This document shows, in pieces, positions 16,281-55,509 of a stretch of 64,000 bases of DNA. A program made the translations under genes and the position numbers. Position 1 is the stretch's first letter. Each line of letters begins with the position of its first letter. The notes under the pieces are model-generated. The model was given only the letters and a program-made list of their open reading frames with translations, was not told where the DNA came from and searched no databases. Location of the stretch: NCBI GenBank assembly GCA_009103225.1, contig RHPI01002368.1:773397-837396 (forward strand). Reading direction: 5' to 3'. The DNA is from Chlorokybus atmophyticus (taxonomy: Eukaryota; Plantae; Mesostigma and Chlorokybus algae).

Positions 16281-17198
16281 AATTGATCTGGTTTGACAAA
16301 CTCAGACGTCGGCAAACTAGCTGTGTCGATCCCGGTCGCCCTCCCGCCCAGCGGTCAGGCCTTTGCTCATGGGCGGCGGTGGCGGCATAAGCAAGCAGCT
16401 GGCGTGCTTGCACTCTGCTGTTGGTCATGGTGTTCAAGTCCACAACAGCACTGCACCTAAGTTAAGCTGTGTTTGTTGTGTCTAAGCATTGTGAGCTGAA
16501 GCAACAACTCGCTTGCATGTGCCCTCCAGGCTAGTAGCTTCCGCCCCATTTGAGACGCAATTTTCGCGCGTTTTGCTGCTTTCTTCTTGCACATTGTTGA
16601 TTACGAGCATTGTGGAGCCAAGACATATAAAAGCCATTGGCTGCGTGTTTCACGCCAGCAACAAAGAGACATGACAGCTAATTGGGCAGCTGAGCCACCT
16701 GGCTGAAAGAGCAGGAGCGCAGTGGCTTGGGCCAGGCCAGTAAGGTTCAGGCCAGGCTGGTATGGATGAAGCTTCTCCTCATATCAGCGGAAGCCAGGTA
16801 ACATGACATGCTCAGTGAATTGCTTGCATGCTTGACGGTGGCTGAGGCTGTCGAGTCAACAGCGCCAAGTTCAGGCTTGCCGTAACTCAAAGTTTTCAAC
16901 GCACTGTAGCTCATGTCACGCTTCAAGTCCAGTCCTAAGTAGTACTGACGAGGGCACATGTTTAGTGTGCTTAACAGTTGAGTGTCTGCGTGAAGGTCTG
17001 ATAGCAGCAAGCAGTGTGATGTATGTACTCTGTGGCATGCACAAGCAATGCAGTGAACTCTCTCGTAAGTAAAGGGTAGGCAGTAGGCGGCATGAGTCAT
17101 GTACTTTTAAGCACAATCATGATTCTCCAAACGCACTGTTGTGATTGTGGTTGTGGTAGTGGTAGCTCATAGCTCTGTTTGTGACCAAGGCTTTGCAG

Positions 17199-19661
17199 GT
17201 GCGCTTTGGCGACACCCTGGTCCTTGGCGTTGATGGCGCAAATGGTTGGTGTGTTGGCACTGACGACGGCTCCTTGGTTCTGGAGCTCCTGGACCCTTCC
17301 GTACAGGGGTTACCGCATGTGTCGCACAGCATCTTCACAGTACGTGAGCTTTTGCTTGAAGTTTGCATGTTAGCTACTTGCAGGGAAACAGCTGCATTGT
17401 CTACCATGCCACTGCTTGTGCTTGAGTGTGTGCATGCGCTTGTGCGGGGGTGTGCGCGTGTGTGTACATGTGCTCTTATGTGCACTTGTGCACGCGCATG
17501 TGCATGAGTGCGCGTGTGTAGGTACGCTTACGTCCGCTTTGCAGGTGCACACGCGATGCCAGTATGCTGCAATGCTGGCCTTGCACGAGCAGACAAGCTT
17601 TTACAACCAGCACAGTCACAGCGCTTCTGCACGGCTTGATGAGGTGTATGTGCTGTTGCATTGTTGTTGGGTGTTGATGCTATTGTCATGTATGGTCGCA
17701 AGCAAACAACTTGACCATTCACTGGCTTGCATTCATCATGGTGTGTTGCTTACTCACTTGCGGGCGTGACACAGCCCGCGCAGCAGTTCTCCGTGGCTAA
17801 GGAGCAGGCTCGGCTACAAGAACTGCAGTACAACAAAGGTACAACAATGCACTATAGTGCAAAGAGTACTGCTTGTGCGCCATGACTCATTGCTGTTTGT
17901 GCGTGTGTCTCACGGCCACAACAACATGTCACCGAATGTGCTTGTACCGTGCACAACATGTGTGTGCGTGATGACGCATGTAACCAAATGTGTTGCACTG
18001 TGCATATACGGTGCATTGGGTGTGTGTGCAAGACACCTCAGGCAGACCATGAGGCATGCATTGCACATGCCACTCAACTGTCATTATAAGCTATCAGTAC
18101 CTGTAGTGTTTATTGTGTTGGGTTTTATGGAATGTACTCTCATCCGTCCATGTTACGTAGAACTCTTTCATCGTAACATTGGTGAGGCGCTTGTGTATGG
18201 AGAAGTCTTACAACTGCAGCACGTCGCCACCGCTTCGTTTGTGACTGCCCGCAAGCAGCGTGCGCTGGTTGAACGCAACAACTTCAGCGTAAGCTTCATT
18301 ATGCCCAACACGTGAGTATCGCATAAGTGTTGTCCCAACACAATACCGTTTGGCTATTGCCATGTACTTGTGTATGGAGCAGGTTGTTCTGGACGCCAAT
18401 GGCGATGAAGGCTCGTGGTTTGTAATTTTGCCAGCCCACAATGTGAAGGTATGCCTGGTTCGTTTCTTCAATTGAGACCAGATTTGTTACATGTGGCTCA
18501 TCTGCACATGCTAAAGGTGCTTATCGTAAAAGTCCTCTTTACTGACAACGGCACTCAATCTAGGGTGTAGGCGACAAAGTGAACTATGGGGATATTGTCA
18601 ATGTTGTCAGTGCAAAGTATACCAACATCGGGTCAGTACAATAACATGCATGATGGTCATCATGTCGTTGTAATCAGTACCTGTAAAGCTGAACACATTG
18701 GTATTTGTATGTTTGTCAAAGGCATAATCTGTAACAGCATAGCAGCATGTATGTCGCTTTTGTGTACTGCTGAGTTCGGTTCCAGGCTTCATGTGTCTCT
18801 GCAACCTGTTGCCATGGAAGCGCATCAGCCACACCCATACATACGTGACGTTCGTGAGGTGAGATGTGCACTTTGCTATTGAGACTCTGTGTTCATTGCA
18901 TCTGGTAGTGCTGATATGAGCCTGCACAACAACAGGTTAATGGAGCAGAGCAGGTCACCCACCTATCATTGACTTTTGCCTCGGAGCATCGCACGTCAGC
19001 ACAACTCAAGTCAATCCTGTTTGGCGGAGATGTTGTAATGTTGTGTCACAAGTAAGTGCAAAGCACATATGTTGGGCGCATATTGGCAAACAGGACTTTG
19101 GTTGGCTTACGCTGTGGTTTGTCGCAGAGCAAGCAACAGCATATTGGTATGCGAAGACAAGGTTGTTCACTTCACCCACCCACCACAGGTGTACAGTGCA
19201 AGGCACACATCCAACTCACAATGGCATTCACTCGCTGCTAAGCCTCTTTCTGCTGTGAACTCTTATGAATGTGCTGTTTGTGTCTCTAGCGAATCTGGTG
19301 TACTTATGTTGGACATCTGTGTCGATGTTACATTTGCTGCAGGAAGGCTGCAGTTCAACTTCACTATGGATTGTTCAGAGCACTGGAGTGGAGGGAAGCA
19401 CGACGGCTGTCAAGCGTGTGCAGGCATGAGCTGTCATCATCACACGCACACACACACATGTGCACGCACGCACAAACACATACACACCGTGGCCTGATGG
19501 CTCACGTATGCATGTCTTTCAGACAGTCTTGTTGTGTGCAGTTGGTGCGCTTCAAGCATTATGCGAGCGAGCTGTACCTGGAGATCACGGCACCCACAGA
19601 CACAGGCAGCACTCAGCAAGATAGGTATGTTGCAATTGGTACTCGTGTGTGGTGGGTGACT

Positions 19662-19705
<44 letters not shown>

Positions 19706-22700
19706 NNNNNNNNNNNNNNNNNNNNNNNNNNNNNNNNNNNNNNNNNNNNNNNNNNNNNNNNNNNNNNNNNNNNNNNNNNNNNNNNNNNNNNNNNNNNNNN
19801 NNNNNNNNNNNNNNNNNNNNNNNNNNNNNNNNNNNNNNNNNNNNNNNNNNNNNNNNNNNNNNNNNNNNNNNNNNNNNNNNNNNNNNNNNNNNNNNNNNNN
19901 NNNNNNNNNNNNNNNNNNNNNNNNNGGGGGGGGGGGGGGGGGGGGGGGGGGGAAGAGGTGTATGTGGGCGTGTGTGTCAAGGCAATACGCAGTACCCACG
20001 GGTATAATTGGTGTTACTGATTGCTGCATGCTTGGCCACCTGAACTCCGAGCAGTAGGTCCAGCCACATGCTAGGAGTACAGGTCACCGAGTTGTATGAC
20101 TCATTGAGCACGCTATGGCGGCTGCACATTTTTGCTGATGACGCTGATGACTGCGTCCCCGTGCCCAGCACAATTTATATGCAGGTGACACCTGATGCCA
20201 CTTGCACAGGTGTGTGTGCAAGTGGCATCGAACGTTGTGTGTGCATGTGCATGAGTGCGTGCATGTGTGAGCCATACGCGCATGCACGTGCACGTGCACA
20301 AATAGGCATTGTAGTCGAGTTCTTTGGCTCTGTCACTTGCGCATGACGGGCTCCATTGTTATTATGCAGTCGTATGAAGCACGCGGTTGGCTGTCGGAGG
20401 AAGTGGCTTTTAGTTCTGTTACACTAACGTCCGATAGGCCTGATCACAGTGGCTCGGACCACAATCTGCGCCAACATGTTTTTGATAGCATATCAAGCGA
20501 CCGCAGCACTGCAACATCTTCAGGTCAATGCACACATGGTCAGATGCTGTATTGCGGCACAGAAGAGTTGTATACCAATGTCAACTTTTTCTGCAGATAC
20601 CCTTCACGGTGTGAGCATTGCACCATATCGCTCAGAGCGCGATGCACTTGAGTTGACAAAGCCCGATGCACAGTACCTGAGTCAGCTGGCAACTGTTCTG
20701 CATGTGTGTAATGTGCTGTGGAGAATTGTGTCTATCTGATGTTGTATGTTTACTTGAGGTGCTCTGCACTGACTGTGTTCGCATGTGGCAGGCACAAAGG
20801 AAGCTTGCAAAGTTTATTCAGGACTTTCACCAATGTGTGAAGCCTTTGACTGCCAGTGATGATGCAGCAGGCATCCTAGAGATAATACAGCAGGTTGTTG
20901 CCCCTGTCACATGCTCATCTGTGTGCACGTGTTGGCGCGTGCATATTTGCGTGTGCGCATACGCTTCATCAAGCGGATGTGCAAAATGTTAGGGACATAA
21001 AGCTTGTCAACCTATGGCATATGTCGCCTTGCAGGATCAAGACGTTTCGGCAGTGCTGCAAGTGCATGCTGATGTTGTGGAGGTGCAGCTGCTGAATATT
21101 GTCCATCTGTTGGATATCCCGGAGCACTTGGTGCAATATGGCAAATACCATGTGCAGGTGTTGTAAGTTATGCAACCTAGAAAACTTTGCTGAGGTGGTT
21201 GGTGAAGGGTATGGTGATGTAGCAAGGTGTACCTCTAATTACACGCTGATGTCTCTATTGTGTGCAGGCGATGATGTACGAGCAAAAGCTTTGTGACACC
21301 ATTCTCACCGTGCTGGTAGTCATCTTTCTGAAGAAATGCTTTCCTGCAGCGTGTGTGGACTCGACCAGCATCGAATTGCAATACACTGCTACCAGGCTGA
21401 GCTCCGTGTGCACCATGTGTCTTCAAGTAAGCGTGCAGTTGAGAGTGTTGCTTGCTCGCAAGTGTGTACGAAGTAGTGCTCGTTGCTGACTCGTGTCACC
21501 CTCAGGTGCTGCGATTGGCTGTGGCGGCATTCCCTCCAGCACAAGCGAAGCTGGCACGGGCTCGACACGTGTTCTTCAAATTGCTTGGTATGCAATTGGT
21601 TGAGAAGCCATAACACTTGTTGTGTAAACTCAACAAAGCCCATGCAAGTAACTCACACGCACATATGTGCACACGCACATATGTGCACGTGCACACAAGT
21701 ACGCCTGTGTGTACGCGCGCGCATACGCACAGCCACACACGGATGCGGGTACACGTACATGTTTTAGGATGCACGCCATGTGAGCACCTTGAACACAAGT
21801 GCCCGTGCACATGCGAGCGTACACAGACACAATGTAGGACGCATGCCTCGTGAGTCATACACATGCAGGTGCACGCGCACACCTCATACACACGCACGCG
21901 CTGTGCAGGCAGTGAGCAATTAGCTGATGTGACGATAGACGTGCTATATGCCACTTTCCACGGTAACTCGGAACTGCTTGGCACCTTACGCATGGAGGAC
22001 TTAGAAACTCTCACAAACGGTTTGAGAGTACATCATCGCCACCGATGCGTGTCCTTGTTGGAGGGACTCTGCAGGTATATATCATGTTGGGTGCCGCGCG
22101 CGTGCGGGCATAGTTGTGTATGTGACAAAACTGTTGATTCACAGCGTGGACGGGGCTCCCGTGCCCAGCATACAGAACATGCTTGTGGACCTGCTGCTGC
22201 GTCCCGGTGTTCTGCTGCAGATCACCGTGCAGGACGATGGGCCACACACGCAGGTAAGAACCGTGTGTGCATGCGTGCGCGTGTGTGTGCGCGTACAGTT
22301 CGTCAATGGTTGGTGCGTGTGTAGACAGTGCGCATAGCTGGCCCAGATGGTCTGCAATACGACTGTCGACAAACCAATATAGAAGATGATAACGCCGTTT
22401 TGGAAGGCTCCTGGGAAGAGAGCCAAAGTGTCAGAAATATTCACGGCAGTGCTGGCGAGAAGTACTGCCGCTATCTCCTCGCCTCCTTACAACTCTTGTG
22501 TGCTCTTTGTGCTGGAAGGTGCGCTTAACCCTCAAGAAAGCCCTCTTGCATGTCATCTAGATTGCATCTGACTGTTTGCGCGTGTGTGCGTGCGTGCGTG
22601 TACTTTTCTCAGGAATGGCAAAGTATGCTCGGTGCTTGTAGCCAACGCAGAAAGTCTGTGCATCAGTGACTATCAGCTGCTTGTTATGGCTTTCATGCCA

Positions 22701-25700
22701 GGACTGCCCATGCTGCTGCGCGCGGCGTGTTGCCGGCTGTTCTGTCGGTTATATGTACAACAAGAGCCGTTTTGCGTGGTATCACCAATAAGCCGCACAA
22801 GGTATTGAGTTAAAGATGTGCGTGTGTGCGCACGCGCATGCGTGTGCATGTGTGATGATCTGAATGGGCACTCATATGTGGCAATTGATCAGAGTTTGGG
22901 GCTTTACGGAGCAGGTGTTGGCAGACAATTCGCTACAGGTGACAAAGCGTTTCTAGCACGTTTTGCTTAGCACATAGGCAAGCACACGCATGCTGCCGTG
23001 CCTATTATGCCTAACCAACACATTGGCGTGTTGTCTGTCAGGCTGTAAACCCACACATTAATAGCTTTAAGAAAGCTGCGACAGAGTTTCTTAAAGACAC
23101 GCAGGGTTGCTTCAGCCTGAACTCTATGAGCCGCAACGTGTTCGTACTTGCAGGTGTTTGCTCCCTGTTTACAATGCATTGCGCACCGAGTGCACGCGTG
23201 TGTGCTTGCGCGTGTATATGTGTGCGCGCGTGTGTACGTGTGTGTGCGTGTGTGCACCTGGGCTTGCATGCGTGTACATGTGCACTTACTTCTTCCTGCT
23301 CTCTACCATATCCACACAGTCCTTGAAGCCTTACAATTGCTCGTCACGTTTGGTCTCTTTGACTCTCCTCACCCACCATCCCCATCCACGCTGTCGCTGA
23401 TATCTCTTCTCATCTCATTACTGAGCGGAGCCAATGACTTGGTGCCCGCTGGACGCTCCATGTTTGAGAAAGCCCCCGACACACTCATCGTCATGAGATG
23501 CAAGACCACAATCTGTGAAGTTCTAATGTACTTCCTGGAGTGCCATGAGAACCAACTGCTGACGGAGGTGTACCAAGCCTTCTGCTCCATGCGGAGTGCG
23601 TGACACACGCACATATGCACACTTGTGTGTATACATGGGTTGTATCTGGAGTTCGACTACTGTGGTGACAAGTGGTCCAGGGTGGCATTGTGCTGTGCTG
23701 ATCCTGCTTGAGGGTGGTCTTATTTGGCACGGTGGTGATTTGGAGAAACATTGAAAGTCACATGTCGCTACGTGGTGTGCTTGTGCTTCACCATCAGCTG
23801 TTGTTGTATAACAGCTGTTTGCCCGCAGACTCAACGAAGCCGCACGCCAGCCTCGGCAAACGCTTCAGCAAATCAGTCTCTGAGCGCTGGAGTGTCCGTC
23901 ACCTCAAGATCTTGCTGGTACAAAGCTCCCTCCACACATGCATTTATAGCTTGCCCAACCCACTTGCGAGTATATACTCATAGCATCCTTGGTATGGTTT
24001 TGTCAGGATGACGCGAGTATTGCTAGACCCGAGACCTTTCCAAAAGAGTCTTTTCGTGCTTTGGAGAAGGAGCTCTTTGCAGAATGCCACTCTGCCACGG
24101 GACAGCAGCAGCTGTTGAGCTCCCACAGACGCTCTCAATTGACCAACATACTCTTGAGTCTCACGCGCTATGAGTACACGCCTTTGCAGGTATGGGTGTT
24201 GTGTCTAGGTTGTGTTTGGGCTCAACTGGAGGTGGGGGGGGGGTTGTAATTAGCATGCCGCGCGCAAACACATATGCACCGACGCATATACGCACCGACG
24301 CACACAATGTGCATTATGCCATACAACATGCCACAAGCGCACGCACGCGCACACAGAAACACACCCACCCTCCCACAGGCCATTTCCTGGCGTTTGGTTG
24401 AGCGTCTCCTCGGTCAGCGTGAAGCCGTGGTCTACGACGTGTTGGGCACTCAGCTGCTGGTGTATCCGGACGTGATACAAGCGCACCGGCAGGCCATACA
24501 GGACCTCAGGCTCCTGCACAACCAGCAGAAGTGGCTAGCGAGCGATGAGGAGCAGAGGGGCCAAGAAGCGCAGATGGCGTGCAAGCAAGTATGCGAGAGG
24601 TAGAGTCAATGCGTGTGGTCGTGTGCACTACTTGTGTTATACGCATCTTCCTACGTATTACACACATACACACATATTTACGTGTTTGTGTATATATGTG
24701 TGTCGCACACATGCACACAATCATGTGTCTGTTTGCGACACACGCATACACACATTGTTTCATGTGTGTATGCACATCAAACAAACGCGGCACACACTAC
24801 GTGTGGGACTCACAGTGTGGTCCACTCGTGTGGCAGATTGTGTGCTTTGCTTGAGTTGGAGAATGGCAGCAGCGCCGGAGATCACAAACATGCGGAAGTT
24901 CAGCCGGTACGCCATTAAAACCAGTGGTTTCTTGCTTCTATTCCATTAGTCAGTACACCCAACGTTATTCAATAAACTTGTCACAGACCATAGAGCATGC
25001 GCCCGCTTTGGAGACTGTCCACCGCAACCAGGCGATGCTGTACAACCTTGACATTGTGCAAGCCATACTTGAGGTTGAGTGCACTTGTTGGCCGACATGT
25101 CATGCACATATGCACGTAATTGTGTAGTCATGGTTGACAATGAATATTTGCAGGTGCTGAAGCTTCCCATCAAGCGCATCAGACCCGACACCAGCCTGGA
25201 CGTGGATGAGACCAGCCCCGGACTGATAACACGCGCCCGTGCCTTGGAAGCTGTTGGTGAACTTGGTTTGCGAGACCTGCTCCAGGCTGCATATACATTC
25301 CTTGGACAGGCAAGCATTACCTATGCCACTACTCTTGGTGTTGAATTCTCAGTGTTCTCAGTGTGCAAGTGACTATTGCATGCATTGTGCAACTGTCATG
25401 TTGGAGCTACGAAGGGTTCTTGAGGTTGCCACACATCAGGCTTGGGAACCGAATCACAAGGAGACGTACACGCATTGCCCATCATGACCAAACAGCGTGA
25501 AAAGCACACATTGACCAACATGTTATCAAATTGTGTTACGTCATCACCAACCTACATTGTGTTATCGTTGTTGTTGCAGTTATGTTGCCCTATCTTGCGC
25601 GCGGACCACCCTTTGCCTTGGCGTTTGCTGCTCGGTTCCAATGTTGCCTCAGAGTACAGCCTTCACGCAGCCTCGCAACACGATGTCGCACACAATGTTG

Positions 25701-28700
25701 GAGCGTATTTTCCTCATCTCATGTTGGACGGCGTGTGCCCAGCCGCAGCACATGCTGTTGCAATGAGCATTATGGGAAACGCTGCGACTTGTGGCGCGTT
25801 GGAACAGGATGTGGTAAGAGTGTGATGTGTGTGGACATACATGTGGGAATGCGTGTTTTTGCCTGTGGGTATGTGCGTATGTCGGTTTATGCGCGTGTGC
25901 GTGTGTATGGGTGGGTATGTTTATGTGTGCACACACATACAAATACGTATACACAACACACACAACACATCATTGTCCATGGTGGGGTGCTTTTGTCGAG
26001 TTTATTGTGTTGGGTGCTCCTTGATGTCTATATAGCGTGCAACACACGCACGTACAACACCTTTTTGTCGGGTTCATTGTGCACTACTTTAGTACATAAC
26101 ATGCTCGGAGGTGGCACTCCAACACGCACTGCGCATGGCCATACACAAAACTCAACACCCTCTTATGTTGGCTTCTTGACACACGCAGGTGCGCCGCATC
26201 TTCCGCTGCGTCCTTCAATACCGCCGCTGCAGTTTGATGAAGATACTCATCGTCGCCGTGTCCACACGCGTGCAAAAGTTGAAAGAGTGGGTGTCCCGCC
26301 TTGCGTCCGATTATCAAGAAGAGGCGTTAAATTTATGTAAGACTCCTGCTGAAGTGGCACGCCGGTTTCGCAAAATGAAAGACAATGAACACGATGTGGC
26401 GGGAGATGTGTCTGAGCTGCGGTATCACACGCTGTCTGTCACCCTCATCGCCTTATGCTGCCAGGTATGATGAGATTGTACATGTATGTCTTACATGTGT
26501 AGTTTTGTGTGAATTGGTATGTGCACACATGCATACGAAATGTATCTGCTGAGCCACGTGAATGCCATTGCGTTGTGTGCAGTATGTCTATGTAAACGTA
26601 AACCAACATAGCATCATGGTGCTGTACGTATACATAACCATGCTGTCACGATCGTTTGATTAGATTTCAGTATGTGTGAGCATTATGGAAGAGTTGACGT
26701 CGTCACTCCAGTCTTACATCTGAAGCTCTTCTTGACACTGTTCACTCTTCATTCCAGGGCTCTCCCAGGCCAGAGACAGTGCATCAGGCATCCGAGTTGG
26801 TGAGTTGGTCCGACTGCATGGCGTCGCTATTGGACCAGCGCGGGGGCACACGGCCATCATCGGAACACAACAGCAATGACAACACCAGCAACCGACCAAC
26901 TAATGCCGCTGCTACGACGCTGAGATTCGTCAAGATGCCTTATATGCTCATCCTGCATTATGTGTATGTACAGGTAAAATCTGGTGATGTTGCTGTTACT
27001 ATCTTGCTTCTGCCAGTCCGGTTGTTTTGTGTGTTCATTGTATTGCTGTGATTATTGAAAGTAATGTTTGTACAATAGGCGGAGTCTTCTAAGGGCAATG
27101 TAGACGTTCGCTCCTCTCACAACAGACTCTGGCCTGGTGTGAATAGGAGTGGCAACAGCCTGATGCAGGTCGAGTGAGGAGTGTGCAGTTGCACAACATG
27201 GCGTGCGTGCGTGCGTGCGTTTGTGCGTGCGTGTGTGTTCATACCGTCTGAAGCTAGTGACATGCAGGACGTGTTGATTGATTTGAAAGATGCAGTAGAT
27301 GAAGCAAACAGTGCAGATTTGACACATTGGCAGCCGCATCATGTTGGTGAAGAGGGTTCGGCCCTGGATTACATCATATGGGCTGTCCTGCCTATGCTCA
27401 CTTGCTACATGCGCAATCACTGCCCACCTGTGAGCACAATGACTGCCGCACAAGTCAGCGCACTACAAGCCGTAAGTCGGTGTGGACAGTATGTGTACGT
27501 GCGCGCACACATGCATGCGTGCTTGTAGTGTTGAGATTGTTTGCACTCCTGTGTGCATCTGGGCATACTTTTGTGTATGAGTGTGCGTGCGCGTCTTTGT
27601 TGATGCGTATGTGCGTGCATGAGGGTGTGAACACTTGCTACTGTGCAGTTGAAGTCCACATGTGAAGACCTTTACACCGCCCTTCCAGCTGGCGTCGAGC
27701 GTTCAGCCGTGGAGGCGTTCCTATCTAGCCTGCAGCAGCAACACATCAACTTAATTGATGCAAATCGCACGTGGCACAGGATACCTTCACAGGCTTTGCA
27801 GCGATTGGACACGCAGCCTCCTGCAGAAGAAGAGCTCATTATGATGGACTGGGCCATGTTCACACGTGCATTCGCTCAAGCGTTGGGTGTGGATGTGTCG
27901 AGTGATGTGGTGGAGGGACGTAGCAGACGCGTGTACAGGAAGTTGCTTGGAGGTGGAGCAGCTGGCCAGCAAGGAGAAGGAGGAGTGGTGCGGCAGCTGG
28001 TGCAGATGATGTGTCAGCCTGGTAGGAGTTGTGCAAGCGTGGTTGCTGATGTGGCAAGAACACACGTATATGCACAAGCGTGCGCAGACACCCGCCCACA
28101 CATGCACACGCACACGCACAAACCCATACACATTCTCATCTCAGGTGCCCTTGAGCACGTACAGCCTCAGCTCCTCCGCGCGGACATTGTCTCTCACCTC
28201 GCCTTCATGTTGGCCACCTCTGCCGACTCTGCTCTGCCCCCAGACTCCGCCATCAGATTACTAAAAGTCCTCATCGGTCTCCTCTTTGTCACCGACGTTG
28301 ATGGTGTAATCTCCACGGATGAGTTTGACAAGAGGTGGGACCTGTGGCAGGCAGGCTTGCACGCCAACATGGCGTATGCAAGCCGAGAGGAGTATGCTGA
28401 AGTACAGGCATGGTATGTGCATATGTGTGCGTGTGCGTGTACACGCGTGCGTGTGTGTGTAGCTGGACGATGCGTCAATGTGCATATGGATATTTCGTGG
28501 TTGTGTTCTTGTGACTGTTGAATTATTGTGTATCAGTATAATTCTACCATACAAGTACAAGGTCAGTCATAATGATTGGAGTAATATGTATCATTAGAAT
28601 GTCATCATGCAGTGACCTAACGCCAAATGCAATGGTCTACTACTATCTGTTGCCGTGTCGTTGGTACCACTATCAATGCGTATTGTTAATGAGTATTGTT

Positions 28701-31700
28701 GTTGCATCAGGTACCACGAGTTGGGTGTGACGAAATGTGCAGCGACGCTTGTATCACATCCGCAACCCAGCATTGCGGCTGGTATGTGGCTATTTATAAT
28801 GAATCCTGTGTACCCATTGCTTTGCTATTGTTGCGTGCTGAACTGACACCAGTGTGCCACAGAGGCTACTGTCTTGCTCATGCTTTTGACGGATAACGGC
28901 ACCGAAGCCATCACAACCGTCGCGCTTGAGGCTTTGTCGTCCAATGCAAAGTTTCTCAACACAGTGAAGAAGATCTTGCAGGTGTGTAGGCGTGTATGTG
29001 TCCGTCATCAACGTGCGTGCGTGTGTATGCACGCGTGTGCGTGTGCATGCGCGCGCACGTGTGTGTGCTGGTGCCCGTGCGCTTGAAGAGTGTTTGTGTG
29101 CATGTGCGTATGTTGATGTGATTGCCTTGGTTGGTTGATAATGTACAAATCTATCAAGTAACTCACGATAGTAACACATCAGGAAGCCAGCACCACCGCG
29201 CGCAAGCAGATCAAGATTCTTCAGCGCATCCGTCAAGAGCGCGTCTTGCAGGCTCTTCAGGTGTCGTTGCCTAAATCCCAATCTCAGAACAGTTTCATGA
29301 ACACAGAGCGTGAAAAGAGCGTGTGGAGCGGCGGCAACAGCAGCCTACGCAGCAGCGGCTTCACGACACTGTTGAGGACAGCGACGGCGCAGTTGAGACG
29401 AAGCTTCGCACGGCGAGCATCGCTTGGGTTCAGAAGACATAGGCACATGACACATGATGAAAGTGAGGTACCTGGTTGCTACATATCATGCCTCTATTCA
29501 TGTATATCTGCACTTCATATTCATGTATGGGTACAGGTATATACGAATGCGTGTGCGTGCATGCGTGCGTTCGCGCACGCACGTGTGATTGCACATACAC
29601 ATGTTACAATATACATACAGAAATGTGTACATGCATGCATACACACGCAAATTTGTAAGTGTACATAGTTATGTCCGTTCGTGTACACGTGGTCACATGG
29701 TTGTGTTCTGTTCCGTGCAGGTGCCCAACGTGCAACACGTGCTACGGATGCTCCAGTCCTTCTACAAGAGGCAGTCCAGTGGAGCACCGCGACTTTTGCT
29801 GACTCCCTCCGGCACGCAGGTATGGTGATACATCAATCTTCAATCTTCACCTCATTCTGCCAAATATGAACGCATTGAAGTGGAAATCCATCAAGTTGTA
29901 TACAACATGAGCCGGACAAAGGAAATTGTTAGTTAGTGCACATTGTGAAGTCTTTAGAGTACAGGGCACTCATTTATCATTTTGGACGTTTAACTGGCAG
30001 GAACTACTGCTGTACCTTGTGCGCTACTTGGAAGCTCTGCAGCCGGGCATAGAAGACTCGATGGGTAAGCTGTCATTTATACATCTCTGTTGCTGTTGAC
30101 ACCTGCCAGCACACACCTACACACAAGTGCGCAGGCTTGTATGCATGCGCGTGATCAGTACATGCCTGTGCCCACACGAGCGCGCACATCTTTGCAACAT
30201 ACGCGATTAATGTGATGATGATGCAGGCCTTGGAGATGGAAATATATCCATTGCAGCTGTTCAGGTGTGCAAGACAATCACTGCTTTGATGTCAGGCCCC
30301 ACACTGGACAATCAGGTACATGAGTTAAGACTGTTCTCAGCAATTAGCTCTTCATCAGCCTGCAACCCAACAACACAACCTTGTACAGGTTTTAGTGGCA
30401 CGCAGCAACTTCCTGCAGCTCTCCCTTTGGATCTTCCGGAACCAACGCTACGAGCCAATGCTTCCTTCTTCAGAGACACACATCCCAACCCAACAACAAA
30501 TCCACTCAACAACAGACCCACATGGCACACACATCGCGCGCGCACAATCACTCAAAGGCGGTCCCGCCGTGAACAACTTTAAGTGCCTCCTTAAACAGGC
30601 CATTTCGGACTCATGGCTCGCTCTGCTGGAGGAACTGCCTTATATCCAGACCGAGATACCAGCCAAGCTGCTGGATATATTAGACTTTGAGCTGGTTTTG
30701 GAGAATGCTCAAGTCATAGTGGATCTGATACATGATGCGAGGAGCTTTCTTGTGCGCTCGGGTTTAGTTGGATCCGATTCAGCAGCAGCCATAACAGGTT
30801 TATTGAATCGGTCCGCATGGCCAGCGATGTATCAGAGCTTCTCTGGACAAGATATCGAGCTCAGGCTGCGAAGGGAAGCGATGTCATGCCTGCTGCTACT
30901 GCAACGGCTCGACGATATAGAGACAGTCCAGAGCCGATATCGAGTCGGGCATGTACGAGTCGTGTTTCTCGCAGGGGTGACAAAGGGTCATGGAACAGTG
31001 CGTGTGCCCGTGCGTGTGCATGCGTGCTATGTGTTCATGTGTGTTGTTCTGTGTGCAGCCTCGTTGCACTCATGCCAGCGGCTGTTTGAAAGTTCAGCGC
31101 AAAGGAACTCTCTGTCTTGCTCATGCACTTGACAAGCATGAGACTTCAAAGGCGTTCTTTGACAAGCACAGAGGGACTGTAGAAGTTCTACATAATGGCC
31201 AGGTGAGAATCATGTAGACCGCAACTGTCTGGGTGATGTTATGTAGGCGGTTATTGTTTGTACATACTCTGTGTGAGACGTGTGCAGCATTACAAAGAGC
31301 ATACTGTTGTTGGACAAAGTCAATAGCTGATTGTGTTTTGCTATCATTGCGTACTGGGTAAGTACTTAAATTTTCCAAGTAACAGAGTCAAAAGTTTTGT
31401 GCATATGATACTGCTTCTTTGGGTTCTACGTGTAACCTTCTGCAAACTACGTCAGTTGTGTGTTGATGCAACTTTCACAAAATGGCTAGCATGTATCTGT
31501 GTGGTCATTGCATGCGCGTGCGCACATCATAACCATCTGACCCCTGCTCTCATTTACAGGTCCAGCTTGTTCGTTTCCAGTTGCCTGATGACTTGCATCG
31601 TGCGCACAACTCCCGCGGCATTCATACTATCCTCAAGTCCTTGCAAAAGCACCGTTCAGTCCAAACGCCCAGCCAGCACGCCACACTTCTCATGCAGCAG

Positions 31701-34494
31701 TTGAGACTGGAGGTGTTTAGAAACAACCACAAGGCGAGGTTGAGGGCGGCGGGGGTGGTACTGCCGGTCGTGCAGAATAATATGGCGGTAAGGGAGGGGA
31801 GGGATATGTGCGCGCGCAGGCATACATGTGCACATATGCGTACATGTGCGTGCGTGTGCGTGTGTGCGCACGTACACACACATGCATACATATGCGCATG
31901 CACAGCACAAACTAGATGCAAATGCAGTGTTAGTAAAACATGGCAGTACATAGGTCTGCAAATTTGTAATTCTTCGTGTGTTGCTAACCATCATGTCACG
32001 ACTGTGTTTGTACAGTACATCCTCGCTGTCCCCTTCTTCATCTCCTTGTGTCTGCTATTGGTGCTCACGCTTTGGTACGGTGACGGTTTCAACAACTGGC
32101 GCAACACCGGAGCGCCCTACATCGTGTTTCATGTGTTTGCTTGGCTACAGGTGCAGTTCATGTGTTGTGTGGGAGAGTGTGGCTGGGGGCGAGGGGANNN
32201 NNNNNNNNNNNNNNNNNNNNNNNNNNNNNNNNNNNNNNNNNNNNNNNNNNNNNNNNNNNNNNNNNNNNNNNNNNNNNNNNNNNNNNNNNNNNNNNNNNNN
32301 NNCGCATATGCGTATGTGATATTGTTGTTATGCATTAGGTGTTGGCCACATGGACCACACTTGTGTTGTACACCTTGGCGGAAGGTCCAGTGTTTGTGTA
32401 TGAGCATGAAGGCCGCCATACCCGCCCTGATGAAATGTAAGCATAGTAATGTACTTCATGCCACAATCCGTGATGTTGGTTACATAGCACGACAACCGAA
32501 GACTAATCAGCAATGCTAGTAATGTCAAATGTTGTCTGTTGCGTGCAGTGAGCAGCGCAGTGTTAAGAAGAAGGCGCAACAGCAAGAACAGCCGCATGAA
32601 GCCGAGCAGACGGATCTTGTCGGCGTGTTGAGGCACCTGGATCGCCCTTTTGACTTTGTGTTCAGGCTGGTTCGCAGATGGTTTAGAGGTGAGAGAGCTG
32701 TGTGCGTGTGCGTGTTGTTATGTGTATGTGCGTGTTCTGGTTGTTGGCGTTGTTTGCCTGGTGGCACTAATTGCCTATGCAGGCTTATCGGAGTACATCA
32801 GGCAAGAACTCCTTGCCGTTAGGTGGCCTTTGTTGTTGTACTCACCACAGGTATGTGCACAGGCACGCTTGCACGCACGCACGCACGCATGCCACTAGAT
32901 ACATGTGTGCATTTTATAGTAGCAAGAAATTGTTACCATTGTGCCTCATGCTTGATGCTTTGCATGTGCTGACAACTTTGTCCCGTAGTTTATCTACTAT
33001 GGCGCTATGTTTATTGCGGCGATTCTCGGCATCTTCTGGGACCCCTTTTTCTTCGCTCTCCACCTGCTCTTTTGGGTCTTCAATCAGCCGCGCGCGTTCG
33101 TTGTGCTGCGCGGACTCCGAGTCGCCGCGAAGGAACTGCTGAAGCTGGGGCTTTTGGGACTCATTGTCATGTATCTCTTTGCGGGTATAACAATTCTAAT
33201 AATAATACTCTTGGCAATTTGGTATGTGGGAGTGTGCGTGCATGTGTGTACATGTGCATTACTGTGTGCGTGTGCGTGTGCGTCAAACTAATAAGTGCTG
33301 CCCCTGCAGTTGCCACATATATGGCGTTCAATCCTCAAGGCGATGGCGACGATGCTTGTGGGTCTGTTTATCAGTGCGTTGGCAAGTATTTTGTTTATGG
33401 TTTCTCCAACCAGCCAATATCTGACATATTTGGTGCGCCGTGGACTTCCGTGCCGATATCGCCATTCAATGAGAATGCCCGCCAACAGCGACGCATCATT
33501 TTCATACTGGCGTTTTACACTATTTATGCCATACTGCTGCTGAACTTCCTCATCGCGCTTATTGTGGACGCCGTCTTAACTGGTAAGTGCACGTGTGTGC
33601 ATGTGCGCGTGTTGTTGGGGGAAGGATGTGCGTGTGCATGTGTGTGTGTATGTGCATGTTTTCACACACTGTTATGGGTATGCATATAATAGTCTGTGCC
33701 TGCCTGCGCGCGCGCGCATGCTTGCGTGTGTGTGCAATTGCGTGTATAATGGAGACCACTTTCAGCAAGTCGAGGTTGTAACTCCAGTGTGCCTCATTTC
33801 AACAGTTCGAGCCTCAAAGGCTGCGCGCCGTGATGACTTGAAGCAACGCTGTTTTGTTTGCCGGCTGCCATGCAAGGTAACTCCCACACTGTGTCAACAC
33901 TATGTCCAGGGAGTTAGACACAGGTGGTCATCGCCATTGGCATGAACGCGCAGGTTTTTGAAGACTTACAGCCAGGCGGTTTTGAAACCCACATAGCGGA
34001 TGAGCACAACCCACTCATGTACCTCTACTACCTGCTGTGAGTGTCCTCATGCATTGCATATGATGTGTATGCATTATGCATATTCAAAATCAGGTATTAT
34101 GTTATGTTGGTGTCATGAGCGATAAAATACGTGCCTGAGGTTTCTCACAGCCACACATATGCACGCACAACCGCACGCGCACACACCTGCACGCACACCG
34201 TATCTCATAATGTTGCTGAACTCTCCCTCTCGTAGTTATGTTGGCAAGAAGGACCCCTCAGAGCGCACAGGTTTGGAGGCGTTTGTGGCGCGGCAGCTGT
34301 CGCAATGCGGGACGGAGTGGTTGCCCGTTGCACGCTCGCACGCGGTGGATGCCCACACACTCGCAACGCGCATTACACGCAACTCAACGCTTGTTGTTGA
34401 TGGTGGTAACGACTTGTCTTCGTTGGCAAGCGCCATCCGAACACTCCAGCAACGCTTCTCACGGCTCGAAGCTGCACTGATACAGAACCCATGA
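17199..34494 (+). CDS. ITPR: Inositol 1,4,5-trisphosphate receptor (ITPR)-family intracellular channel, dozens of exons; true start codon lies upstream of 17199 and was not identified
   Basis: Exons align in order to ITPR domains. Suppressor/MIR: VRFGDTLVL, LVYGEVLQLQHVAT, VVLDANGDEGSWFVILP, GVGDKVNYGD, ILFGGDVVMLCH, SSTSLWIVQ, LVRFKHYASELYL. RIH: CTMCLQVLRL..TFHGNSELL..VSLLEGLC..IQNML. LLRAACCRLFCRLYVQQEP. Second RIH: TFLGQLC..SIMGNAATC. RIH-associated: HVLRMLQ, TALMSGPTLDNQ, LKQAISDSWLALLE. Six TM segments (32.0-33.6 kb). C-terminal zinc finger CFVC..FETHIADEHN and KDPSERTGLEAFVARQLSQCGTEWLP, stop at 34494. No SPRY or RyR repeats were seen, so ITPR-type rather than RyR. Confidence 0.93.
19706..19925. 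other. Assembly gap (N) flanked by poly-G; other gaps at 32198-32302, 45580, 47441-47646 and 53440-53541
   Basis: N runs bordered by G- or C-rich or homopolymer sequence. Confidence 0.99.
25310..25579 (+). other. Probable GC-AG intron in ITPR
   Basis: CAG|gcaagc at 25310 joined to ttgcag|TTA at 25579 gives AAYTFLGQ|LCC. This aligns with ITPR1 AHEFLQNFC. Confidence 0.65.
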
Positions 34495-46667: not shown

Positions 46668-47918
46668 AGTGACGTGTGCTGTCATCTCTCATCTTCATTG
46701 TGTGTCATTGGATGTGCGTCACATGACATGGGCTGTTGATGTTGGTTGGTTCGTGATCTGTAGCTTTTGTGTGCTGTTCTTCGGGTCTCGGGATGGTGAT
46801 GCAGAGTGCTGTGACCTTGTCATTTGACTGATGTCTGCTCTTTTGGGTTTTGTTGGTATCTGCAATTAACCGTGTGCGCTATGAGTGTAATATATGCGAT
46901 GCAAGGAGTGAAATGTATACAAAGCATGCAATGGAGTATTGTGCCATGCATGACAGATGCGATACTGACGACATGCATTTTTGTAAACTCTCAACTCCAA
47001 CACGACCACCGGGCTGAGGAACCAACCGCCGACTTCACTACTTGCGCGTGCGCTTGCGCATGCGCGTGCGCGCGCATGCTGCGTGTGCATGCATGGGAAG
47101 CAAACAGCTGCAGGTGTGATCCTCATCAGGAATATGGAACAGAACTTCAAGTTCACTGCTCTATAATCTATTTTGGGGCTTTTTTCCCCCGCAAATCCCC
47201 GCAATGGATGTTCTGCATCAAACAGCTTTGCCCTGTGTAAACTCGTGTGCATTTGTGATTGCATCATACCATCGCCATATAAGGATGCATCGTTGCTGGC
47301 TGGTGTCAACCTGAACCAGGAATCAGTCATTCAGTGAGCTTGATTTTCTCTCTCCTGACACCATGGCACCCCATGCACCCATACGTTTCTCCTCGCATAC
47401 GCATGCGCACACATGCGCGCATTACCCCACCCCCACCCACNNNNNNNNNNNNNNNNNNNNNNNNNNNNNNNNNNNNNNNNNNNNNNNNNNNNNNNNNNNN
47501 NNNNNNNNNNNNNNNNNNNNNNNNNNNNNNNNNNNNNNNNNNNNNNNNNNNNNNNNNNNNNNNNNNNNNNNNNNNNNNNNNNNNNNNNNNNNNNNNNNNN
47601 NNNNNNNNNNNNNNNNNNNNNNNNNNNNNNNNNNNNNNNNNNNNNNCGCCCCCACCTCTCGTCCCCCGTGTTTGTATCTTGTGTGAAACCCAAAACAAGC
47701 GCACTCTCTCACACAGCGCTGCGCACAATGCACGCAAGCACGCATTGTGCTACAGCAAGCTTGTAACAAGCAGGCCAACACAAATGATGCACTACACCAA
47801 AGGACATGCATGCCACAATTGCAAGACATATAAGAAACAAGAATAACACCAGCAACAGCACCTCATTAACGAGTCATACCAAGTCCTGTGATGCCTAACA
47901 ATGAAGGTTGCATCATCA

Positions 47919-53355: not shown

Positions 53356-55509
53356 TCACGGTCCACTGCACGCACGTGGCAACCGACCACTGCAGCAAGG
53401 ACTTCTCCAGTGTTTAGGGGGAGGGGGGGGGGGGGGGGGNNNNNNNNNNNNNNNNNNNNNNNNNNNNNNNNNNNNNNNNNNNNNNNNNNNNNNNNNNNNN
53501 NNNNNNNNNNNNNNNNNNNNNNNNNNNNNNNNNNNNNNNNNNGGGGGGGGGGGGGGCTTGTTGACTTTGTCTTCCTTTATAGCAATTGTGGTTGGAGACT
53601 CAATCTAAGCCAATGCAAGTCTCACACTACACACCATCTATCAATGAACCGTTCGCCTCATAATTCAACCTGTTGTAATCAGCACCGCTGGTAATGCACT
53701 TAATGTGACTAATGGTTCGTTATACCAATCCGGGTTCAAGTTCAGGTTCAACCAGAGCCTTGCCAGCGGTGCTATTGTACAACTAGTTGAAGAAGTTAGT
53801 TTTCATACCAGTAATCGACGGTCCCACTAATGATTGCTTTATCACCTTTATACGTGCAGCGCTCCCTTCTAGATTTTCTCAATGGCAGCTGGCCTTCCAA
53901 TGCAAAAATCTACAGCGCTCATTGAAATGGTTGGGTGGCACCATCCCGAGCAGAGTCCGAGACCGATACTGTGCCAAGAGGCCCCTTCGTCTTGTTTAGG
54001 ACAACGTTCTCGTGGTGACCTCTTCATTTAATAAGCGTTTGCGTTATTGTCAAAACGCCAGGGCTTCTCGTTGCCAGTAGCGCAGTTGATATGATTGCGG
54101 GCTCACACCGCACAAGTCGCTTATTTAGTTGAGACTAGCAAAAGGCACTATTTGCCATGGCAGGCTCTTTGTCTTTTTCCCTTTTTCATCAGCAATGCCT
54201 TTGTTGGTGTAATGGATAATCATGCTATTAAGCGTCGTCAATCGGTTCTATTGACATTTATGCATCCGTCATTGACGTGACTTTGCCATCAACCCCATGC
54301 AGCCCAACCAGTCAGATATGTATTGTACAACTACTGCAAACATAGAACAGTCTGGCGAGTGCAACTACTTTCAACCTTGTTGCAACAGGGTTGAAACAGC
54401 AGAGGGTGTGCGCGCTGCCGTACATGCTACTAAGCGCGACAACAAGATTACAATTAGGTCTCGTAGGTCAAAAAATGTGCATCTGCGCGTGCGTGTCTTC
54501 TCAAACCACAACACTGCTTTGAAACATGTACAATATAACTACACACAACATGCATGAGGTCAAACCGGGTAGGGCTGTAGGTAAGCGTGGTTGAGAACAT
54601 AGAACAGTATGAGAATAAAGCTAAAGCAACCAACCACACAATTGTGATGCTACGACACTGCATGTGTGTGCGTTGGGGATGCAACTGCATGAACAGTTGC
54701 ATGACAGCAAAGGCTCACAGCCACATACGTCACATGCAAATCCTGAAAACAACCTCACCACATCATGTCTTCCCAGGTGAAATTTCTCCATACACTTGAG
54801 TAGTACATTCGCGTAATTCTGAAATGGAAATTATCCAATTAATTGACCTGAATATTGCGACCCCAGCGTTGTAATGTTAAACAACAACAACAACGAGAAG
54901 ATGCGCACTTAATGCCTGGACAAAAAAGAAAGGTTGTATAAAATAAATAGTGCACATGTTTTATTTTAAACAGCACAGGCGTGCACGATGTAGATGCCAG
55001 GCTCATAACTGTCTGCAAGATGAACAGCGAAACATATTGCTTGTGCTTCACATTTTGCTGTACTGTTCAGTATTTGGGCAACATGAGTTTATGGGTCAAC
55101 AATAATTATCGTACACAAATATGTATTATTGCTATACTTTATACACATTAATGCATGTTGATGTATGGTTGCTACTGTAAGTTTCTGCCTTGCTGCTTTT
55201 TAAGCAATCACATCTACGGGCAATCTGCCTTGTTCTCTTAAAAGAACACATCTGCTGTATTGTTGATGCGCTCAATGGCAATTCATCCGCAAGTTGTAAC
55301 ATGTGGGGGAACAAGCCATTGCACAGATGCATGAGCGCATGTAGGGAAATGCAACATCACTCCTTACTACAGCAGTGTTCAGCGAAGTGGCCGTGCGCTT
55401 GATGCGCTCTGTGCACAGGATGCATATGGATCATGTGTGGCATGCATGCCGGCTAAACACAACTTCATCATGCAACATTACCTTGCCACCTTGCCATCAC
55501 CTTCAACGC

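Follow-up and report, generated by a model that had tools for sequence, protein, structure and literature searches.

A transcribed ITPR-family channel gene of the streptophyte alga Chlorokybus atmophyticus without the canonical IP3-contacting basic residues

It has long been asked whether IP3 was ever a trigger of Ca2+ release in the plant lineage and, if so, how it acted. Chlorokybus, one of the streptophytes that branched off early, still expresses a channel of the ITPR family. Land plants lack IP3 receptors and chlorophytes have them (PMC11085791). If the IP3 pocket had already been lost in Chlorokybus, the decoupling of Ca2+ release from IP3 would predate the loss of the gene, and the protein would be a natural experiment on an ITPR scaffold without its classic ligands. 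Searches of the literature for Chlorokybus together with IP3R or trisphosphate receptor returned no paper, and nothing specific was found on IP3-binding residues in Chlamydomonas. Here, we ask whether the channel encoded in a 64,000-nucleotide stretch of the C. atmophyticus assembly (hereafter the window) keeps the residues with which animal receptors hold IP3, and what their replacement may mean for its gating.

The window contains an intron-rich ITPR-family channel gene on the + strand, at 16762-34494, with about 56 or more exons. A C. atmophyticus gene model for the same locus, eukprot entry jgi/Chlat1/395/Chrsp10S00053 (2657 aa; hereafter P0001), could be placed exon by exon on the window, with about 56 exons from 16762 to 34491, and the reading frame is open throughout these spliced exons. 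Searches with the spliced product used this database entry as the query, rather than exons joined by hand. The locus is an intact, transcribed channel gene of the ITPR family, within the IP3 receptor/ryanodine receptor superfamily, in a streptophyte alga. Contamination is an unlikely source of it, given the many introns, the membership of the model in a JGI gene set, and the occurrence of its transcripts in two studies that share an organism label.

The assignment to the ITPR family is supported by several lines of evidence. Pfam recognizes the N-terminal suppressor/beta-trefoil domain of P0001 (Ins145_P3_rec, residues 16-209, E 3.9e-21), the RIH domain that corresponds to ARM1, the alpha half of the IP3-binding core (residues 545-703, E 2.4e-15), and, weakly, RIH_assoc, while no match was obtained to MIR (PF02815) at E ≤0.1 or to Ion_trans, SPRY or the RyR repeat. 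Among solved structures searched with phmmer, the first 760 residues of P0001 match ITPR2, ITPR1 and ITPR3 with E-values of 1e-17 to 1e-22 and RyR structures at about 1e-3 only, and the ARM1/RIH region aligns with ITPR2 505-661. The C-terminal part matches both ITPR and RyR structures (E 1e-12 to 1e-17); the aligned parts are S5 and the C-terminal Cys/His domain, at ITPR2 2344-2413 and 2536-2633 (E 9e-18). A language-model atlas also ranks ITPR at the top, and Foldseek with the AlphaFold model places IP3R3 and IP3R1 first and RyRs after them, at a TM score of about 0.35. The open frame over some 56 exons, together with the conserved S5 and C-terminal Cys/His motif, suggests that the gene is under constraint.

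At the level of primary sequence, close relatives are scarce. Animal ITPRs give weak, scattered tblastn matches to the window, and they alone were returned by a word-index protein search with P0001 residues 1-760, whereas searches with residues 225-700 and 100-340 retrieved nothing past P0001 itself and no non-animal relative. The closest retrievable relatives are animal ITPRs at 22-33% identity. Exon D (see below), the sole exon that Pfam recognizes by itself (RIH, E 8.7e-4), had a single true match among 1.84 billion representative proteins, namely P0001 at 100% identity, and the second match was an unrelated repeat protein. No Pfam match was found with exons A, B and C singly, which are short and divergent, and phmmer searches of the PDB with exon B or exon D alone gave no ITPR match. 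The gene thus looks like an unusually isolated member of the ITPR family.

The exon structure can be read from transcript contigs of X1 (2021) and X2 (2013), runs that belong to different studies and bear one organism label. About 40% of the words sampled from positions 20050-30000 of the window are present in each run (43% in X1). Over 17100-23000 the contigs of both runs skip at least 15 GT..AG introns and are thus cDNA-derived, and one X1 contig of 8940 nt spans this entire region. Runs X5 and X8 share the study and organism label of X1; of the sampled words, 43% are in X1 and about 3% in X5, and nothing from X5 could be aligned at 95% likeness, as might be expected of a related Chlorokybus species with a divergence of about 8%, which could supply an orthologue.

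Transcript contigs and alignment place exon A at 21035..21157 (+ strand, residues 507-547). It ends in GKYHVQ and includes Y544 (21146-21148), which lies at the position of ITPR1 R504 and directly follows K543. The GT..AG intron after it (21158..21267) is spliced out in contigs of both studies, where 21150 is joined to 21261 with the cut shifted by +7. Exon B (21268..21426, + strand, residues 548-600) starts with AMMYEQKL, carries A548 (21268-21270) at the K508 position and Y551 (21277-21279) at the R511 position, and ends in CTMCLQ, a conserved C-x-x-C...Q. The next GT..AG intron (21427..21505) is bridged by X1 and X2 contigs that pass from 21426 to GTGCTGCGATTGG, the start of exon C; an X2 end at 21428 reads this start, and the offsets of the X1 contig fit. 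Exon C (21506..21587, + strand, residues 601-628) starts with VLRLAVAAFPPAQ and carries F609-P610-P611 (21530-21538) at the positions of Y567-R568-K569, with an alignment posterior of 0.95 or more. It is followed by exon D, the RIH core (21909..22074, + strand, residues 628-682). All introns in the exon A-C stretch have GT..AG ends, and the X1 contig offsets agree with P0001 residue numbers at Q15, S386, D507 and A548. Since the mRNA is the same wherever the ambiguous cut is put, different splicing does not bring back basic residues, and an alternative splice form that would restore them is ruled out by the match between contig offsets and P0001 numbering.

The same offsets and numbering make the run of undetermined bases at 19706-19925 intronic and rule out an exon hidden within it. 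It is one of four such runs in the window (the others at 32198-32302, 47441-47646 and 53440-53542), two of which have at least 20 G at both flanks and look like a scaffolding or sequencing artefact.

In animal receptors, R265, R269, R504, K508, R511, R568 and K569 clamp the three phosphates of IP3. In a MAFFT L-INS-i alignment with 44 animal ITPRs, the residues of the alpha half are replaced throughout: R504 by Y544, K508 by A548, R511 by Y551, R568 by P610 and K569 by P611, with a conservative change of Y567 to F609. An independent phmmer alignment with solved ITPR2, whose numbering is that of ITPR1 minus one, sets V546-Q-A548-M-M-Y551-E-Q opposite R-Q-K-L-M-R-E-Q with a posterior of 0.5-0.9 (about 0.8-0.9 at A548 and Y551), and C..VLRLAVAAFPPAQ opposite C..VLRHSQQDYRKNQ with a posterior of 0.95 or more at F609-P611; the domain i-Evalue of this alignment is 5e-4 to 2e-3. 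The ITPR1 chain, aligned by phmmer over 548-659 with query residues 590-703, likewise puts F609/P610/P611 on Y567/R568/K569. The two methods therefore concur at all six alpha-domain positions. From the genomic letters alone, the first-pass annotation had proposed the spliced reading YHVQ|AMMYEQKL, the changes R to Y, K to A and R to Y at 504/508/511, and YRK to FPP at 567-569. The two junctions (21157|21268 and 21426|21506) are both present in spliced contigs from the two studies, and both sets of replacements are borne out by phmmer and MAFFT alike. In IP3R1, the single change K508Q is enough to abolish the binding of IP3 (PMC13319452).

The loss of basic contacts is not confined to this region, 21146-21545, to which the annotation had referred, and reaches the beta half of the core. 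The beta-trefoil-2 region of P0001 aligns with ITPR2 by phmmer, although AlphaFold confidence there is low. One of its exons (18936..19051, + strand) carries M263 (19038-19040) at the R241 position, and the next (19128..19188, + strand) carries S271 (19138-19140) at the K249 position, both by phmmer and MAFFT. The latter exon also encodes the equivalent of the R265-R269 loop, K278 followed by VVHFTHPPQ up to residue 287, in place of FLRTTGRQSA, the P0001 loop being about 8 residues shorter; the following beta-trefoil-2 exon (19343..19423, + strand, EGCSSTSLW...) rounds off the loop region. The alignment posterior in the loop is low, but the absence of basic residues there is independent of alignment, as the stretch of P0001 from K278 to K311 contains no further Lys or Arg.

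Consequently, none of the seven IP3-contacting Lys/Arg (R265, R269, R504, K508, R511, R568 and K569) is kept in P0001, and none of nine when R241 and K249 are added. To judge from the sequence, the canonical IP3 pocket between beta-trefoil 2 and ARM1 is without a basic side chain at any contact position. This has to be seen against the general divergence of the protein, which keeps 36 of the 110 columns (33%) invariant among 23 animal ITPRs and 2 of the 13 invariant Lys/Arg columns. The two belong to the structural FRFKH motif, and at one further column R has become K. On a 33% background, the chance of keeping none of seven is about 0.06, and about 0.03 with R241 and K249. The depletion of IP3-contact basics is therefore real and statistically modest, suggestive rather than decisive. 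The composition of the region points the same way, with 31 Lys and Arg in the 405 residues equivalent to the IP3-binding core, against an animal median of 49 in 369, and a net charge of -15, against a median of -4 in animal ITPRs.

Our preferred reading, which we hold with moderate confidence, is that this intact gene encodes a channel in which canonical high-affinity IP3 binding is absent and the N-terminal domains act as a structural gating ring for another cue. The beta-trefoil and armadillo (RIH) domains are recognizably kept, while in the cleft between beta-trefoil 2 and ARM1 the basic residues that would clamp IP3 are replaced by Tyr, Ala, Tyr, Pro and Pro and by a shortened loop. High-affinity binding of the canonical kind would then be lost, and the N-terminal domains might work like the homologous A/B/C domains of ryanodine receptors, relaying to the pore some other cue, such as a ligand, a modification or the binding of a partner protein. 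The first-pass annotation had proposed that the channel probably does not bind IP3 and may be gated by another ligand or partner. Its structural part holds, as the canonical pocket is gone in both halves, whereas its functional part can only be put conditionally. The support is partial because, with the canonical pocket gone here, trypanosome receptors with poorly conserved pockets have nevertheless been reported to be gated by IP3 (PMC9694693), and by that precedent loss of the canonical residues is no proof of IP3 insensitivity.

This precedent leads to the strongest alternative, that IP3 or a different inositol phosphate continues to gate the channel via remodelled, non-canonical contacts, as has been proposed for trypanosome and oomycete homologues. 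We regard this as possible, if rather unlikely. Trypanosome IP3Rs poorly conserve the critical residues and yet are IP3-activated (PMC9694693), the two-domain clam architecture is retained in P0001, and the replaced positions are flanked by K543, K554, K615, R618 and R620, which might line a remodelled pocket. Against these stand the disappearance of all seven to nine canonical basics, the prolines at both 568 and 569, a beta loop that is shorter and free of Lys and Arg, and a core that is net acidic, with Lys plus Arg at about 60% of the animal level. An AlphaFold model of residues 225-700, built from a 24-sequence alignment, has a mean pLDDT of 52.7, with the beta-trefoil part below 50 and only residues 554-700 at 70-88, and is therefore unusable for pocket electrostatics.

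The preferred reading, of a channel gated by a cue other than IP3, can be extended to regions outside the binding core. In a MAFFT alignment with 12 animal ITPRs, the glutamates of two ARM3 motifs (LLCENHN and LTEYCQGPC) are replaced in the Chlorokybus protein by K (SFYKRQS) and A (ITALMSGPT); this region lies at 29727-30318, P0001 residues ~1943-2025. We take the glutamates of CENHN and TEYCQGP to be the Ca2+-activation ligands in RyR/IP3R structures. Lys and Ala at these positions would fit a channel outside the IP3/Ca2+ co-agonist scheme, and from its residues at both sites the channel seems to have left this scheme altogether. Separately, H178 of the suppressor domain (18437-18439) aligns by phmmer with high posterior to an aromatic position (SWFVILPAH vs. 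SWFYIHPFW in ITPR2), the aromatic being Y167 in IP3R1 and Trp in ITPR2 and coupling IP3 binding to gating.

The gene model probably needs a correction at the pore. P0001 jumps from IVMYLFA (33183) to VRASKAARRDD (33805) and skips an open stretch (33184-33804) which, by eye, reads as a pore helix, filter and S6 (...YGFSNQPISD...IFILAFYTIYAILLLNFLIALIVDAV, ~33330-33575). The model would thus be about 90 aa too short, with a pore/S6-like exon left out, and the channel would be ~2750 aa rather than 2657 aa long once this exon is counted. The filter region, again by eye, reads ...SNQPISD... and not GGGVGD. Also within the gene, the run of undetermined bases at 32198-32302 separates exon 32016-32153 from exon 32342-32434 and might conceal membrane-region sequence.

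Since changes affect the IP3-binding site, the GGGVGD-type filter and both ARM3 glutamates, one may ask whether the gene, although transcribed, is decaying towards the loss known from land plants and no longer makes a regulated channel. The family has been described as lost from streptophytes (PMC11085791), and no close relative was found among the 1.84 billion representatives. Yet the frame runs unbroken through about 56 exons, two studies yielded full-length spliced contigs of the transcript, and the protein still has its S5 segment, its C-terminal Cys/His motif and one third of the core positions that are invariant in animals, so that we consider decay improbable. It is more improbable still, to the point of being hardly credible, that misalignment, wrong splicing or an assembly gap has simulated the replacements, for even though exons A-C alone match nothing in Pfam or the PDB and the run at 19706-19925 lies inside the gene, the junctions and contig offsets fit residue by residue and make that run intronic, and two independent alignment methods concur with high posterior at the alpha-domain sites.

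If, as we favor, the N-terminal ring answers to a cue other than IP3, a bolder proposal can be made, which we put forward tentatively and ourselves find doubtful. By the time land plants lost the family, the last surviving ITPR-family channel of the plant lineage may already have been uncoupled from co-activation by IP3 and Ca2+. Its cleft, with Tyr, Tyr, Phe, Pro, Pro and His as its present lining, may have been re-used for a different, much less anionic ligand or for a protein partner. Such re-use of the cleft, if true, would be a new gating mode for the channel superfamily.

Among known systems, animal ITPR1-3 are the nearest, being the best PDB and database matches of P0001, of similar size (~2.7 thousand residues) and with the same order of suppressor/beta-trefoil, beta-trefoil 2, RIH/ARM, RIH-associated, S5, putative pore-S6 and C-terminal Cys/His elements. 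Compared with them, P0001 is without the IP3-contacting basics, the ARM3 glutamates and a Pfam MIR or Ion_trans match, and the filter read by eye is ...SNQPISD... instead of GGGVGD. Loss of the IP3 pocket is already known elsewhere, and the Chlorokybus channel adds a case of the same kind. The same loss of IP3-contact residues has been recorded in the IP3R/RyR homologues of kinetoplastids (Trypanosoma and Leishmania; PMC3194816, PMC9694693), where the trypanosome receptors are nevertheless reported as IP3-activated channels (PMC9694693), and residues of the IBC critical for IP3 binding are poorly conserved in oomycete homologues (Phytophthora and Saprolegnia; PMC9694693). Both are likened here by literature description, and both belong to different lineages, the oomycetes being stramenopiles; the added interest of the Chlorokybus channel lies in its position in the plant lineage, from which the family later disappeared. 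Ryanodine receptors are larger (~5000 residues, with SPRY and RyR repeats), and P0001 is half their size and has no SPRY or RyR Pfam match. Their N-terminal modules, which Foldseek also matches, are more weakly similar to P0001 (E about 1e-3) than those of ITPR (1e-22), and by this N-terminal match ITPR is clearly the nearer of the two families to P0001. The A/B/C region of ryanodine receptors, a homologous beta-trefoil/beta-trefoil/armadillo module without an IP3 pocket, is our functional model for how the N-terminal module of the Chlorokybus channel might work.
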